Of a DNA stretch of 64,000 nucleotides, positions 882 to 10,779 are shown piece after piece (the first letter of the stretch is position 1; each line of letters opens with the position of its first letter). The notes beneath the pieces were generated by a model, which was not told the DNA's origin, did no database searches, and saw only the letters and a list, made by a program, of their open reading frames with translations. Position numbers and translations under genes: made by a program. Source of the stretch: Lepidodermella squamata (lineage: Eukaryota > Animalia > Gastrotricha); the NCBI GenBank assembly GCA_047495785.1, contig JBLDXI010000025.1, positions 1,116,001 to 1,180,000 on the forward strand. The letters run 5' to 3'.

Positions 882-2967
882 ATGAAATCATTCGTTCTTC
901 TCATTCTTTTGATCCTTGTCAACGCGGCATCGTCTCAGCAGTGTGCTGGCGCATTTGCGCAATGTGGCGGTCAAACATGGACTGGGGCTAAATGTTGCGT
1001 CTCTGGCTACCAATGCCAGTACAACAACGATTGGTACTGGCAATGTGTTCCGATACCGACTCAATCCAACGGCTGTTCGAATGGCCAATATGCCCAATGT
1101 GGAGGCAATGGTTACACAGGCCTAACGTGCTGCCCAACCAACTATGTCTGCATCTATTCGAATGACTGGTACTCACAATGCAGGCCAAGCTCCGAAGCCT
1201 CGACCGCGCCCACAAGTTCTGCACCATCTGTAACAACGTCAACTGGAGCTCCTTCGACTAGTACTACAACAACCACTACAACTACTACTACCCAGTCCCC
1301 TACTACATCTACCACTACTACAAGAGCACCTTCTACCACTTCGGCCGGTACTCAAGCTCCATCTTCTTCCACTACCCCTTCAGGAGCTTGTAACAACCTC
1401 CTTTGGAACCAATGTGATGGTATCGGCTATAATGGTCCTAAATGTTGCCCATCCGGTTCTGTCTGCGTCTATGGAAATGACTGGTACTGGCAATGCAAAC
1501 CTGGATCTACCGATCCTACAACTCAACCTCCTCAAACTTCAACAACTCCTGCAGGACCTACCACAACTCAAGCCCCACCGCCAACAAGCTTCAACTACGC
1601 TGAAGTTCTTGGAAAGTCGCTCACCTTCTACTATGGTCAAATGTCTGGCAACATTTCGGGAACATTCAACACCTTAACGTGGCGAGGAGACAGCGCTATG
1701 ACTGATGGTGCTGATAATGGCGTCGATCTGACTGGTGGCTATTACGACGCTGGAGATCATGTCAAATTCAGCCATCCCATGTCTTACTCAATGTACATGC
1801 TATCATTCAGTGGATTGCTATACGAGCAAACCTACAAAGCTACAGGCGAGGAATGGCAAAGACTCCTTAATGTTGTCAAATGGGGCACGGATTATTTCCT
1901 CAAAAGCCACACTTCCCGATATGAATTCTATGGACAAGTCGGTCGAGGTGAACTTGGTAAGTCTATGGACCATCAAATTTCGATATTTTGAATATTTTTT
2001 ATCTATAGACCATTCTGTATGGGTTTCTCCTGAACGAATGACCATGGCAAGGCCAAGTTACAAGATTGACGCTACAAAGCCTGGTTCTGACTTGGCTGGT
2101 TCAGTTTCCGCGACTTTCGCCCTATCTTCGATGCTTTTCCGAAATGTCAATTCAACCTACGCTGATATCCTCCTTGATCACAGCCGGCAAATGTTTGATT
2201 TCGCAACTCGTTACCAGGGCAAATACTCTGATTCTATCAGTGATGCGGCTAATTACTACCCATCAGGTGGGTATAAGGATGAGCAAGTCCTCGCAGCTCT
2301 TTGCCTGTACTGGGCGACGAATGAAACTCAGTTCCGACAGTACGCCTATGACAACTCGAGGTCGATTGTTTCCAACACTTACTACTGGGCGCCTAACTTC
2401 GATGATGCCAGCTACATGGATCTTTTCTTGCTATGGAAACTTATGGGTGATACCCAAGCCCAACAAACCTTTGAGACTTGGACGAATTGGTTTATGAATA
2501 ACGCGAAGAAAACGCCTCAAGGAATGGTTTGGTTGATGCAGTGGGGTTCGGCTCGTTTTCCAATGGTTTCCAGCTTCATGATGATGGCTTATGTTGACTC
2601 CAACCCTACCCTGGCTCCTAGCAAAGCTGCTGCTTTTTTGAACTTCTCTGTTAGGCAGATCAATTACGTTTTGGGTAACAACACGGCTGGCATGAGTTAT
2701 CTAGTCGGTTTCGGCAACAAATGGCCGTTGCATTACCATCATGCAGCTGCTCAGGGTTCTACAACCAATAACGCTTGGGATCCTCCGGTAAACAAGTACA
2801 TCAATTATGAGATGGTTGGTGGTCCGGATGATAATGACAACTATCGGGATGCTATTGAGAACTACGTACAAGGCGAGGGTGCTTGCGACATGCAGGTTGG
2901 TCTGGTCGGCTTGGCGGTGGCGTTGGTTAAACGCTTCGGCGGGGCGCCACTGATTGCTTTTCCTTGA
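882..2967 (+). CDS. Secreted GH9 endoglucanase (cellulase) with three N-terminal CBM1 modules and S/T/P linkers; exons 882-1956 and 2009-2967, about 677 aa
   Basis: Signal peptide MKSFVLLILLILVNAASS. Three CBM1-type repeats (QCGG..WTG..CC..GY.C...NDWY.QC). GH9 motifs DLTGGYYDAGDHVKF, PGSDLAG, SYLVGFG, VGGPD and the catalytic Glu in VQGEGACD. A 52-nt GT-AG intron (1957-2008) joins the two ORFs in frame (G+AC = Asp). TATA-like GTATAAAT at about 822. Confidence 0.95.
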
Positions 2968-3828
2968 ATGGATGACTTAAAACTTAACAGGCTATTTATC
3001 AATCTATGCAATTTCGATTAACAATGCTATGGGCTACCTCTCATTGGCTTATTTGTCATCACTGTCGTATTAAACAGGTTTTGTGGAATAAACTGGAATT
3101 CAGGAAATAACCACCACCATCTGATTGAAGTTCAAAAAGTGACAATTCAGTTTGCACTATAGGTATATGAGGGCTGTGATCGAAAGAGTTATGTATTACT
3201 TTTTATGATTTTTTTGCTTATAACGCTAATATAAATCACTCGCGCTAAGTTTTATGTGCAGAAAAGAAACAAAATTGCTGCTGCTAGCGTAGTTCTAATG
3301 TTCTCTTACGTTATTCACGTCATTTGGGTCATTTCCTTCATTCATAAACTTTGACATTGCGCGCACAGGTGAAACACTACCCTCCCGGTCTGCATAACCG
3401 ATGGCCTCAAGAGGATGTTCGAATTCTTTTTTTTTGAAACTGGAAAGCTAGTTTCAACCATATTTCTCAAGAAGAAAATTATCATACAAAATCTACCAAA
3501 AGGTAACTCAATTTTAAATCCGCCAATAGCCAATAGCCGCATTTTCGTGCCACAAACTACCAGTATGCTGATGCCTTTCTTTTGTGATTTTAATCACAAA
3601 CTAGTCGCCGTACTTGATTTACTCATCACTACTCGCCTCCGGCTCGTTTCGATTCGTAAATCTCGTTCAGATAAAAACTTTTTACTCATGTTATATGCTA
3701 TACCATACAAATATAACAATATTTTATCATTGTTTTGTTGTTTTCACCTGATGTACACTGCGAATAATTAACATGCAAATAAAGGATACAATTTTTCAAA
3801 CGGAGTTACGGGCGAAGAAGTACAGGCA

Positions 3829-5678: not shown

Positions 5679-6585
5679 ATGTCAACCAAACCAAAACGGA
5701 AGATTTTAGATGTCGAGCTACAAGGGGTTTGATTTGTGAACAATCTCCCATTCATAATTACAATTTTTCTCTTGACTCCAGAAATTATGGAAGTTGGCGT
5801 ATGAGGGCAATACGGCTGCAATAAATTCTCTGCTGGAAAGCCACGCTGATGCAATCGACGTTAATGCATTCGATAAAGCTGGATCTGGGGAAACTGCTTT
5901 GATGCGAGCATGCAGACGAGGTTGCCTTGAATCAGTGAAATCTCTTGTACATGCCAACGCCGATGTGAATTTGAAGAATGAATACTGTAATACTGCTTTA
6001 TATTTCGCTGCCGGGGAGGGTCACGTGGACACAATGAAGTTTTTGATAGAAAATGGCGCAGAAATCAACACACCAGACAAGAAAAGGGATGCTTTGCTTA
6101 ACGCTGTTGAACCGTCCCACCTTGACGCCGTGAAACTTCTGCTGGAGAACGGTGCGAATCCAGACAAGTTATACGAGACTTATTGCACTACCCGCTGTTT
6201 ACATGAAGCCATTCGCCACGAGAATGGTTTTGAAGTCACGAAGCTTCTCGCGCAATATGTTGACGACATAGATGCAAAGAATGGTAATGAGGAAACTCCG
6301 CTCATGTTCGCGTGCCGGCTGCAGGGGCAGCTCAGAGATGGCGTCGTCGGAAAAGCAACGACTGAACTTCAGAAGAAGGTCAGGTTTTTAGCTGGAAATG
6401 GGGCCAAGGTCAACATGGACGTGCTTCGTTTGGCGCTGGTATCCGGCATGCCAGTTGAGACTGTGAAATATCTTGCTGTGAACATGCCTAAGGAAGAATT
6501 TGACAGAGCACTGGTACTTGAATTAGCAAAAAAGCACAGTGATTATTACGAGCAAGCTATCATGCAGGCTATACAAGGTATTTGA
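5679..6585 (+). CDS. Ankyrin-repeat protein; exons 5679-5726 and 5782-6585
   Basis: Repeated ankyrin motifs GETALMRAC, NTALYFAAGEGH, LLLENGANPD and ETPLMFAC. A 55-nt phase-0 GT-AG intron links an upstream ATG exon (MSTKPKRKILDVELQG). Confidence 0.88.
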
Positions 6586-8193: not shown

Positions 8194-10779
8194 TCACCAA
8201 ACGTCACAACGTTCGTGATAGCGAGGGTTCATCTTCGACCCGCTTGGGCATGAGAAAGCCTTTGCGAAAGGCGCAAAGTTTTTCAGGCCCTCGTTGATCC
8301 TAGAATAAAAATTGAGGCCGATTGATTAAAATACAAAGGACATTCGTCAAAAACCTTTCAGGAGGATAGGCATGTTCATCCTTCAGCATTGCTTCCTTTC
8401 CCTTAGGAGTTGCAGCCTGGCAAAGTGACTGAGCATAGCTGACAAAGAACAGCTGCTCGTTGTTCAGCGGAATAGCAGGAAGCTCAGTGTCTCTCAGCTT
8501 ATCCATGTATGCCTTAGTATAGGCCTGAATTGCATAAAATTCATGTACATGTTGTACTCTTGCGCTATATTCGACTAACCAAATGCGAGATCTTCATGCC
8601 AGCATTGTCGGCAATGTTCTCGCCTAAAACTGCCTCGCCGTAGCCGTCGAAATCAGGTCGCAAGTTTTGAAACTGGTCGAGCAAGCATTGAGTCCGTTTC
8701 TCGAACTTATCAGCCGCATCCTCGGTTAAAACTGGCTTGTACTCACCAACTGCGTTGAACTGAACTCCGTTATTGTCGAAGCCGTGAAACATTTCTACAA
8801 ACAACAATAATCCATGCTATTTGTGAAATATTGAAGCAATTACCATGTCCTATCGTTGTAGCGGCGAAACCCCAATTCCAAGCTGCAGGCATGTCCCATT
8901 TGAACGTTGGAGCGATGAAGTAACCAGCCAGCAATGCGAAAGCATTATCAGTTGATTTGTAATATGCGTTTTGATCCATAACCTTGGACGGCTCGCCATC
9001 ATCCCATCTGACATTAGAAAAGCATCAATCATCACTCAGTCAAAAAAGGTAGAAACTTGCAAGTTTTTAAGGCGGTCGACAGGTTTATCAAGGAGCTGAA
9101 ACCGGTTTCTAATGCGATAATCATTGAAAGCTTTGATGTTATGAAGATAGTCTGGGCCATTGATGTTGAGGTTTTTGAAACGCTCGTCATAGCCCTCATC
9201 CGACATTAAATCATTGGGATAGCCCATGGAAAACAGCATCTTATCGACTTTCACCTTGATTTCATCTCGCGATTTCTCATCCAGCCATTCGATTGATGGG
9301 AGGTATTCGAGGAATTCATTCATTACAGCCCGAGTCATGTCGTTGAGATACTTCACATTCGCATCAGGAAAGTAGCGCTTGACAAATCGTCTTGCAATCA
9401 GGTGATCTCCGAATCTGTTGGTCGTGGCCTCCTTGCATCCTTCCTGATTCTCCTTCACAGCGTAGCAAGCTTCATCGACGGGGGTAATTTCCTGCTGTTT
9501 GATAAGTTTCTTTAGGTTTTCGAATGGTAGACCTATTGAACAGGCAATTTCATTGAAGTAAGGCTCCAAAGTTACTAAGGTGATATAGTTCTGAAGAATT
9601 CGCTTTCCACGATCCTTTCTCGCCAAAGTTTCTTTAATCAAAGCTTCCAACCTCCTGAAATAGCTTTTGTGACGGATTGAGAGCCGCAAATTGATGATAT
9701 TCTTCTCGGCCAAAGTTTTTGTTCCGATTTTCTTGCCAAGATTAGTGAAAAATTCCTCCCAATCGAAATTCCACCCAATTTCATACTTTAGTTCGTAGGC
9801 AGGCATGTCAAATTGATTATCATAATCGGTAGCGTAGCTCTCATCATCATTATCGTCGTTATTCTCATCTTCATCTTCATCCATAACTGGGGTAATCTAA
9901 ATTTCATCGATTTTAGCGTCGGAGTCTGAGAAGAGAAGGTAAACTTACTTCTGCAAGCTTCTGTTCGAATTTGATCATATCAGCAATGTATTTATTGTTG
10001 AAGTATCGTTGCGGTCTTGTTGCTGTTTTTGTCGCCAGGTCTTTCACGAGATTCTCATAGGTTTCCTCGATCTCTTCTATCAAAAGCGAAGTAGTATTTT
10101 CGTCATCCTTTAATGCATTCATAGTGTCGTTGTTAGAGAAGAACGGCGTCATTACAGGTTTTAGCATGAGCTGATAGCGAGACGAATTGCGGGTATCGAC
10201 TTCGACTGAAACATCGAAAAACGGAAACCCATTAGAACTAATTGCATTAGCTAGGGCTTTCTCGAGACTCCAGATTTTAGGTATGTTCGTCTCAGCGAGA
10301 AAGAATCCTCCAGTTGAGGCAAGAGTAGATCTCAAAAATGAAATTGAGCTTGCTTCGTCGTCAAAACGCTCTTCCCCTTCCTCGCAGGACTAAAGCACAA
10401 AAATCAGTTTTGATGGAATAAATTGCTCTAAATTCACATTGTAAAATTCAAGTAGTTTCGATTCGCTCTCGGGATATTCCGTAGTGTTTCCCTCCAAGAA
10501 GTCCTGCCAAGATTTCGCAACCATGTCCCTGAAACTTGGCTCCATTGGGGTCTGAGTGTCTTCCTTTAAAAACACGTTTTTCTCGAAATTTCCGCAACTG
10601 AATTGATGAAAATCTTCGCATGGATCAGCATTTAAATCGAGATTGCTAAGGGCATAACTTGCTGCCTGGATACAGGACGCGGTCAAGCATGTCCCTCCTG
10701 GAGACGCCGATTCTATTGGGAGACCAGAGGTTACCATCAATACAGCCGCAAGTGCTGATAGAACTGTTAAAAGTGACAT
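8194..10779 (-). CDS. Secreted M13 (neprilysin/ECE-like) zinc metallopeptidase, multi-exon
   Basis: Signal peptide. CLTASCIQAA..NLDLNADPCEDFHQFSCG; QNAYY; GH|EMFHGFD (HExxH split by an intron); GENIAD; EQLFFVSYAQSLC; FSCPSGSKMNP..CDVW. Short GT-AG introns link the ORF-track fragments. Confidence 0.93.

Follow-up and report, generated by a model that had tools for sequence, protein, structure and literature searches.

A gastrotrich GH9 cellulase gene with three N-terminal CBM1 modules and nearest relatives on giant-virus-like DNA

Animal cellulases of glycoside hydrolase family 9 (GH9) are usually taken to be ancient and vertically inherited. A 64,000-nt stretch of the genome of the gastrotrich Lepidodermella squamata (the window; contig JBLDXI010000025.1, here C25, positions 1116001-1180000, + strand) holds at 882-2967 (+) a GH9 gene that carries three CBM1 cellulose-binding modules ahead of its catalytic domain, which raises the question of where such a gene came from and what its product does. 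An earlier note on this DNA, made from the letters alone, read it as a bacterial Cel9A-type GH9 domain and fungal CBM1s, brought together from two kingdoms in an animal-type gene, with the CBM1s in place of the CBM3c module of such enzymes. We find that the gene is resident in the host and is neither a contaminant nor part of a block of viral DNA, and that its catalytic domain groups with environmental proteins encoded on giant-virus-like contigs. It probably encodes a secreted GH9 endo-beta-1,4-glucanase derived from a giant-virus-like GH9-CBM3c(-CBM1) gene that was acquired once.

The gene consists of two exons (882-1956 and 2009-2964, with a TGA stop at 2965-2967) separated by a single GT..AG intron of 52 nt, and its frame of 677 codons is intact with an exact splice. 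Intron retention would give an in-frame stop at 1989-1991. Excision joins a codon split as g and ac (Asp) and gives the predicted product ...GRGEL-D-HSVWVSPERMTMARP... (HSVW region), colinear without a gap with a paralog on contig C19 (GRGDLDHSYW) and with the environmental protein P0002 (GQGELDHVWW). The coding sequence is at 48% GC and the intron at 25%, compared with 43% for the window as a whole. The features of the gene, here and below in window positions unless a contig is named, are as follows.

822-827, +: TATAAA box, read from the sequence, 55 nt 5' of the ATG.
882-935, +: start codon, the first ATG past the TATA box, and predicted signal peptide MKSFVLLILLILVNAASS, then QQ (by eye).
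942-1046, +: CBM1 module 1, 35 aa, six Cys with a 'CC' doublet, 'CA..G' type (Pfam CBM_1).
1074-1181, +: CBM1 module 2, 36 aa, 'CSN..YAQCGG' type (Pfam CBM_1).
1182-1388, +: Thr/Ser/Pro-rich linker 1, from its composition and a weak Pfam Mucin match.
1389-1496, +: CBM1 module 3, 36 aa, 'QCDG' type, the best Pfam CBM_1 stretch (residues 174-202).
1497-1589, +: Thr/Pro-rich linker 2 (37% Thr, 30% Pro by composition count).
1590-1956, +: N-terminal part of the GH9 domain, with the DAGD catalytic base motif (Pfam GH9 profile 1-122).
1957-2008, +: spliceosomal intron, 52 nt, phase 1, GTAAGT..ATAG, 25% GC; excision restores gap-free colinearity with homologues.
2009-2967, +: C-terminal part of the GH9 domain and stop, with the clamp His and Tyr, the catalytic Glu and HHA, ending ...AFP (Pfam GH9 profile 125-443).
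3087-3092, +: AATAAA polyadenylation signal, read from the sequence, 120 nt past the stop.

Searching the exons separately (882-1955 (+) and 2011-2964 (+)) recovered Pfam CBM_1 in three stretches of exon 1 (E 2.7e-33, 114 bits, cut-off 20.6) and Glyco_hydro_9 in both exons (exon 1: E 2.4e-38, profile 1-122, 133 bits; exon 2: E 7.4e-68, profile 125-443, 230 bits; cut-off 27.7), placing the product in the GH9 family (PF00759) across both exons. Each CBM1 module (PF00734) has six Cys and aromatic residues at ..[FYW].QC.. and ..DWY[WS]QC. The putative signal peptide was judged by eye from a hydrophobic core and small residues preceding QQ, and linker 1, with T 27, S 17, P 8 and A 8 over 72 aa counted (37% Thr, 24% Ser), is probably O-glycosylated. 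The C-terminus ...LVKRFGGAPLIAFP ends at the exact point where relatives go on with PPxETxGxEF..., the start of CBM3c. The layout of signal peptide, CBM1, CBM1, Thr/Ser linker, CBM1, Thr/Pro linker and GH9 thus agrees with the earlier note in every detail, as do the single 52-nt intron at 1957-2008 and, on alignment with relatives, the stop where CBM3c would begin; its description of an animal-type gene fits the spliceosomal intron, TATA box, AATAAA signal and host-gene neighbours.

Which kind of GH9 domain is this? Among PDB matches to exon 2, the termite enzyme 1KS8 (E 5.4e-61) and the GH9-CBM3c enzyme 8U49 (E 1.3e-59) score nearly alike, so a tree was needed to place it. A word search with the open frame 1735-2964, scored on exon-2 residues alone and with proteins of up to 717 aa eligible, returned five environmental proteins at the top (P0001-P0005, 44-54% identity), all with GH9 plus CBM3c; termites, actinobacteria and cyanobacteria reached only 37-42%. 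An exhaustive search of 1.84 billion representatives found none closer than 54% and added P0090, P0091, P0092, P0094 and P0095 to the relatives. The genome itself holds exactly three GH9 loci, namely the window gene and copies on contigs C19 and C9, and the N-terminal part of the GH9 domain is 76% identical to both paralogs and 55% identical to P0320 and P0002.

In a 76-row maximum-likelihood tree of the exon-2-homologous region, animals and plants were separated from bacteria, the environmental relatives and the three gastrotrich copies (support 99/99), and the gastrotrich copies lay within the environmental clade (99/98 and 100/99). An approximately unbiased (AU) test ruled out a grouping of these copies with the named animal GH9s (delta lnL 282, p 2.1e-6). 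In a focused 32-row tree of the exon-2 part the gastrotrich rows came out as a single clade (support 96/90, and 97% of bootstrap trees), which fell within an 11-row clade alongside P0001, P0002, P0003, P0090, P0091, P0094 and an open reading frame of contig L009 (100/99); the sister clade comprises P0004, P0005, P0092, P0095 and L011, and all 16 rows were grouped at 100/99. An independently built tree of the exon-1 part again united the gastrotrich copies (99/95) and joined them to seven environmental relatives (96/93). Because both halves are placed alike, the catalytic domain itself is no mosaic, and an intragenic chimera inside the GH9 domain was ruled out. L010 was likewise removed from the virus-like set, as it groups with a bacterial GH9-GH48 protein in the 32-row tree. 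The window gene therefore belongs with CBM3c-bearing GH9s in the trees, and its product lacks the C-terminal CBM3c of the Cel9A/E4 type.

We examined five contigs that carry the relatives. All are compact, intronless and ORFan-rich, with both strands coding. L128, which carries P0320 (full-length P0001, the closest relative at 54% identity), encodes a poxvirus-type poly(A)-polymerase regulatory subunit (PF01358, E 1e-18) and a dUTPase. Contig L009, extended to L126 through its XPG protein (28.5 kb, 30% GC; GH9 at 49% identity), encodes Rpb5, XPG/FEN1, patatin, GT92, DUF5872, a restriction-modification pair and many ORFans; its XPG has about 45 environmental relatives at 36-65% identity, with named cellular FEN1 at 32% or below. 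F-box/ankyrin proteins, SWIB, an SMC-like ATPase and a GH10 fragment occur on L005/L006, and a mitochondrial carrier and an Eco57I-type methylase on L008. Eukaryote-type and poxvirus-type genes packed without introns are a signature of Nucleocytoviricota, and a viral origin of this gene pool is probable, not proven.

Several observations weigh against a single acquisition from giant viruses. No capsid, PolB or A32 gene was seen on the relatives' contigs, no virus name appears in the relatives' records, and a scan of IMG/VR with the GH9 alignment gave 12 pattern matches, 0 of them confirmed, so that the viral label rests on gene content and compactness. The catalytic base motif is DCGD in all virus-like relatives versus DAGD in the animal copies, bacteria and termites, and the motif EFYGQVG is common to the animal copies and termites, which argues against deep nesting. 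Monophyly of the gastrotrich copies was recovered in only 46% of bootstrap trees of the 76-row analysis. The Mimivirus early-promoter octamer AAAATTGA had 0 matches in L005 against 1.2 expected, too few to inform.

Three further features of these virus-like sequences are worth recording. On contig L005, which carries P0002, a GH10 (xylanase-family) fragment lies 6 kb from the GH9 gene (L005:3198-3806 and L005:10001-11878), so that such genomes may hold more than one plant-cell-wall enzyme. On L125, a short environmental contig and one of the five examined, an intronless eIF2-gamma gene (L125:2094-3383) lies 18 bp from the GH9-CBM3c gene P0091. Six virus-like GH9 proteins (P0320, P0003, P0005, P0090, P0004 and P0002) end in a small tail, [YK]-W/x-x-C-x-x-C, after CBM3c or CBM1; the animal copies are without this W-x-C-x-x-C tail.

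The three gastrotrich copies differ in their modules. The C9 copy (C9:~4.76 Mb) is intronless and consists of signal peptide, Thr-rich linker, GH9 and CBM3c. In the C19 copy (C19:~471 kb), a pair of CBM1s and a linker precede GH9, and a single 55-nt intron follows WDDAS. Introns thus number one, one and none in the C25, C19 and C9 copies, at non-homologous sites, and the different positions in C25 and C19 indicate that these introns were gained after duplication. A one-residue insertion (SG-N/K-I-S/T-GTFNTL) is common to all three copies and absent from every other sequence aligned; together with the single clade of gastrotrich copies it points to a single acquisition as the source of all three genes. 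The C25 and C19 copies stop at a homologous ...FP, and no CBM3c remnant was found downstream of either stop (for C25, within 4 kb), from which we infer a single loss of CBM3c in the ancestor that they share. The first two CBM1s of these copies also match in type, 'CA..G' followed by 'CSN..YAQCGG', while the third CBM1 and a change from HHR to HHA are specific to the C25 copy. Measured against the C9 paralog and all close relatives, the proposal that CBM3c was replaced by CBM1s holds.

From these comparisons we suggest the following order of events. A GH9-CBM3c(-CBM1) gene from a giant-virus-like pool would have been taken up once by the animal lineage and then duplicated to give three paralogs, of which the C9 copy keeps the presumed ancestral GH9-CBM3c form with no intron. 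The common ancestor of the C25 and C19 copies would have lost CBM3c at the same residue (...FP, then the stop) and gained an N-terminal cassette of signal peptide, two CBM1s (CBM1a and CBM1b) and a Thr-rich linker. The C25 copy would later have gained its third CBM1 and the 52-nt intron, and the C19 copy its 55-nt intron at another site.

Where the CBM1 modules came from is best approached through the GH9 relatives. Four of the 234 retrieved relatives carry a CBM1 (P0001/P0320, P0005, P0090 and P0092), and all four belong to the environmental clade of the animal copies; in each a single module lies C-terminally, after CBM3c, and is of the six-Cys 'CC' type like those of the animal. The pairing of GH9 and CBM1 is thus older than the animal genes, and there is no need for donors from two kingdoms. 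An N-terminal CBM1-GH9 arrangement occurred in 0 of the 234, and multi-copy N-terminal CBM1s without CBM3c were likewise found nowhere else. At least 30 CBM1 modules are present in the animal genome, nearly all with six Cys and the 'CC' doublet, where the only alignable fungal reference has GCKTC. Pairwise identities among 31 CBM1 modules all fall at 50-64%, a range in which origin is not resolvable and the Cys pattern and module type alone are informative. Module 3, which the C19 paralog lacks, shares 56% identity with the CBM1 of the virus-like P0005. A word search with modules 1 and 2 gave 2 candidates, both fungal GH10-CBM1 proteins (64-67% identity over about 35 aa), and an ESM Atlas search with the pair returned CBM1 clusters without recorded taxa (scores 0.83-0.85).

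CBM1 also occurs elsewhere in the genome. On contig C2 (~624-640 kb; L089:898-2856:+, L106:1276-3087:+, L090 and L093), each of four adjacent open frames has between 1 and 9 CBM1s, and in at least two of them the CBM1s are N-terminal to a Neur_chan_LBD domain (E 1e-12 to 6e-13, FPFDxQxC motif), a combination that may represent a cellulose-binding ligand-gated channel. The cassette of signal peptide, 'CAG..' CBM1, 'CSN..' CBM1 and Thr-rich linker heads genes without any other recognisable Pfam domain at C19:2625-2627 kb (L111, L112), C25:866.9 kb (L108), C3:1454 kb (L103) and C10:1648-1650 kb (L109, L110). With its 30 or more copies, CBM1 is a widely reused module in this animal genome. A bolder proposal is that a giant-virus cellulase was re-engineered in the animal, which dropped CBM3c, on which bacterial relatives depend for activity, and placed as many as three CBM1s ahead of the catalytic domain, and that its virus-type 'CC' CBM1 then spread onto unrelated genes, including Cys-loop receptor ligand-binding domains; we regard this as a tentative idea, possible but on balance slightly disfavored.

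The surroundings of the gene are those of a resident animal locus. Contig C25 is 2.48 Mb long and the cellulase gene lies between multi-exon animal genes, which identifies it as resident and not as contamination; exons of M13 (neprilysin-type) peptidases occur on both sides within 3-6 kb (C25:1108-1114 kb upstream, window ~9-10 kb downstream). Beyond these, on the downstream side, lie an ABC transporter gene of several exons (13.4-17.5 kb) and a gene with a DZF domain. The flanking M13 genes are tandem and multi-exon (window 9036-9884 (-) and C25:1108-1114 kb, L130:427-5969), and two near-duplicate M13 exons (MEGKEVLEDYDASIAF... and MEDYDASIAFMRK...) show local duplication. A single-exon ankyrin-repeat frame of 263 aa lies at 5794-6585 (+), 2.8 kb downstream of the cellulase gene.

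How do other explanations of this origin compare? The separate arrival of a bacterial Cel9A-type GH9 and fungal CBM1s, joined in the animal, draws on the position of the GH9 clade on the bacterial, CBM3c-bearing side of the tree, on the exclusively fungal GH10-CBM1 matches of modules 1 and 2 in the word search, on the 64% identity of module 2 to a fungal module, on an N-terminal CBM1 position absent from all retrieved relatives, and on the 30 or more CBM1 modules on other genes as a possible source. We consider it distinctly unlikely, however, as the nearest GH9 relatives already carry CBM1, the 'CC' doublet is found in the modules of all four of these relatives and in nearly all of the animal's but is GCKTC in the fungal reference, and named bacteria reach only 39-41% identity versus 44-54% for the virus-like clade; at 35 aa, with all pairs at 50-64%, the CBM1s are too short for phylogenetic placing. 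The earlier note's assembly from two kingdoms is accordingly unnecessary. Its Cel9A/CBM3c-type assignment of the GH9 domain stands on the separate GH9 phylogeny it had proposed, which places the domain on that side of the tree and inside the environmental clade, and the groupings it named as contrary outcomes, with metazoan GH9s or on a contaminant contig, did not occur (AU p 2e-6; a 2.48-Mb contig with animal neighbours). A further contrary outcome, the whole architecture in a single donor lineage, was realised for the set of modules and failed for their order, and the CBM1 comparison it suggested could be made module by module but gave no phylogenetic placement.

A cellular eukaryote such as an alga, amoeba or other protist might instead have supplied both giant viruses and the animal, or the animal lineage might have been donor to the viruses. 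Retention of DAGD and EFYGQVG in the animal copies, unlike every virus-like relative, would fit such a course, as would the polytomy within the 11-row clade and the five clade members on contigs too short to classify. We hold it to be unlikely, since the animal clade is one branch within two virus-like layers (the 11 rows and the 16 rows, each 100/99), no named eukaryote among the 87 and 150 best matches is closer than the virus-like proteins, and the relatives keep CBM3c, the bacterial ancestral state. An ordinary endogenous GH9, vertically inherited, has the best PDB E-value on its side (termite 1KS8) and next to no probability otherwise: the AU test and the trees of both domain halves place the gene elsewhere, and the paralogs have introns at different sites or none, so we rejected it. 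A contaminant contig or misassembled viral DNA would explain the non-animal affinities of the gene; it is very improbable, and was rejected, given the 2.48-Mb contig, the multi-exon M13 genes that flank the gene on either side within 3-6 kb, a spliceosomal intron whose size and composition match those of the host, and three diverged paralogs on three contigs. One acquisition from a giant-virus-like pool is the reading we retain.

We next consider what the protein does. With residue roles taken from PMC10149213, the C25 copy keeps DAGD (YYDAGDHVKF, exon 1), the clamp His and Tyr, the catalytic Glu, W178, R182 and the S/G/D/E residues of the Ca site. Both aspartates of the Asp-x-x-Asp motif (D51 and D54) are invariant in alignment A2, and the catalytic Glu, exon-2 residue 289, is invariant in alignment A1 and 99% conserved in 221 sequences; the +1 clamp His is the first residue wholly encoded by exon 2, and the clamp Tyr precedes the Glu by four residues. 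Throughout the clade the sequence is E-G-x-x-D-M-Q, versus E-V-A-x-D-Y-N in other GH9s. The PROSITE-type GH9 active-site signature 1 includes ...[PLIVM]-H-x-R; the C25 copy departs from this H-x-R with Y-H-H-A, and both paralogs have the Arg.

The main functional rival is that the C25 protein is no longer a working cellulase, but a weakened or purely cellulose-binding protein or a decaying copy. The H-x-R arginine is 94% conserved in 221 relatives and Ala in the C25 copy, alone among the gastrotrich copies, and a conserved Trp at exon-2 residue 130 is Phe. CBM3c, which this copy has lost, is essential for Cel9I activity, the GH9 module of this type being inactive without it (PMC4579020). The substituted arginine and the missing CBM3c both count against our preferred reading; our literature search found no account of the role of the arginine (Cel9A R378). 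Loss of function is nevertheless improbable. The 677-codon frame is intact with an exact splice, and the active site retains DAGD, Glu, clamp His and Tyr, W178 and R182. Ala occurs at the same position in six other sequences, so that HHA is a natural state in animal GH9s such as lobster P0054, and animal and plant GH9s work without CBM3c. The terminal branch of the C25 copy, at 0.38 versus 1.0 for the C9 copy, is not long. The C25 product is thus likely to be an active secreted endoglucanase anchored by its CBM1s, and probably non-processive. In this scheme the protein would be secreted, and three CBM1s on glycosylated linkers would hold the enzyme on cellulose while the GH9 cleft cuts chains by an inverting mechanism, with Asp-x-x-Asp as base and Glu as acid; lacking CBM3c, it would probably act as a non-processive endoglucanase digesting cellulose in food.

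The C25 protein can be set beside several known systems. The bacterial processive endoglucanases of GH9-CBM3c type (Thermobifida fusca Cel9A (E4), Clostridium Cel9G/Cel9I and AtCelR) fall in the same half of the GH9 tree at 37-43% identity to exon 2 (PDB E 1e-44 to 1e-59) and share Asp-x-x-Asp, Glu, the clamp His and Tyr, the Ca site and ...GG.PL..FP before the CBM3c linker. The C25 copy differs from them in being without CBM3c, in bearing three N-terminal CBM1s in place of CBM2 or CBM3b, in HHA for HHR and E-G-A-C-D-M-Q for E-V-A-x-D-Y-N, and in being a eukaryotic gene with an intron. The environmental GH9-CBM3c(-CBM1) proteins (P0001/P0320, P0002, P0003, P0090, P0091 and the L009 frame) are closer, with 43-54% identity in exon 2 and 55% in the N-terminal part, and share EGxxDMQ with the animal copies, but keep CBM3c, have DCGD and the W-x-C-x-x-C tail, and have no introns. 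Endogenous animal GH9s (termite NtEgl 1KS8, earthworm EF-EG2 3WC3, and crustacean and mollusc enzymes; ~39% identity) are single GH9 domains without CBM3c, secreted and digestive, as the C25 product is predicted to be; they are without CBM1 and group with plants in a clade of their own (99/99).

Foreign cellulases in invertebrates are already well known. The GH5 and GH45 enzymes of nematodes and the GH45 enzymes of beetles and springtails were domesticated, gained introns and were duplicated (PMC3032686, PMC8826503, PMC13084967). They belong to other GH families and have bacterial or fungal donors, whereas the nearest pool for the C25 gene is giant-virus-like and its binding modules, unlike theirs, appear to have been rearranged after transfer. 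None of the papers found by our literature search deals with a GH9 of giant-virus type, with GH9-CBM3c-CBM1 proteins or with an animal CBM1-GH9, and nothing relevant came up on giant-virus CBM1 or on gastrotrich or rotifer cellulases.

Together our results describe a second GH9 lineage in an animal genome, one whose nearest relatives lie on giant-virus-like DNA. The three paralogs appear to keep successive stages of its history, GH9-CBM3c, then 2xCBM1-GH9, then 3xCBM1-GH9, with the C25 copy as the most derived member revealing the order of domain changes. As a natural experiment, they also bear on whether the catalytic domain of a Cel9A-type enzyme can do without CBM3c if different binding modules are supplied. 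To our knowledge, the sources of animal plant-cell-wall enzymes recognised so far are bacteria and fungi; if the viral origin is true, giant viruses would join them. Should the spread of the 'CC' CBM1 prove true as well, a family of digestive enzymes and a reusable cellulose-binding module would both trace back, in an animal, to one viral transfer.

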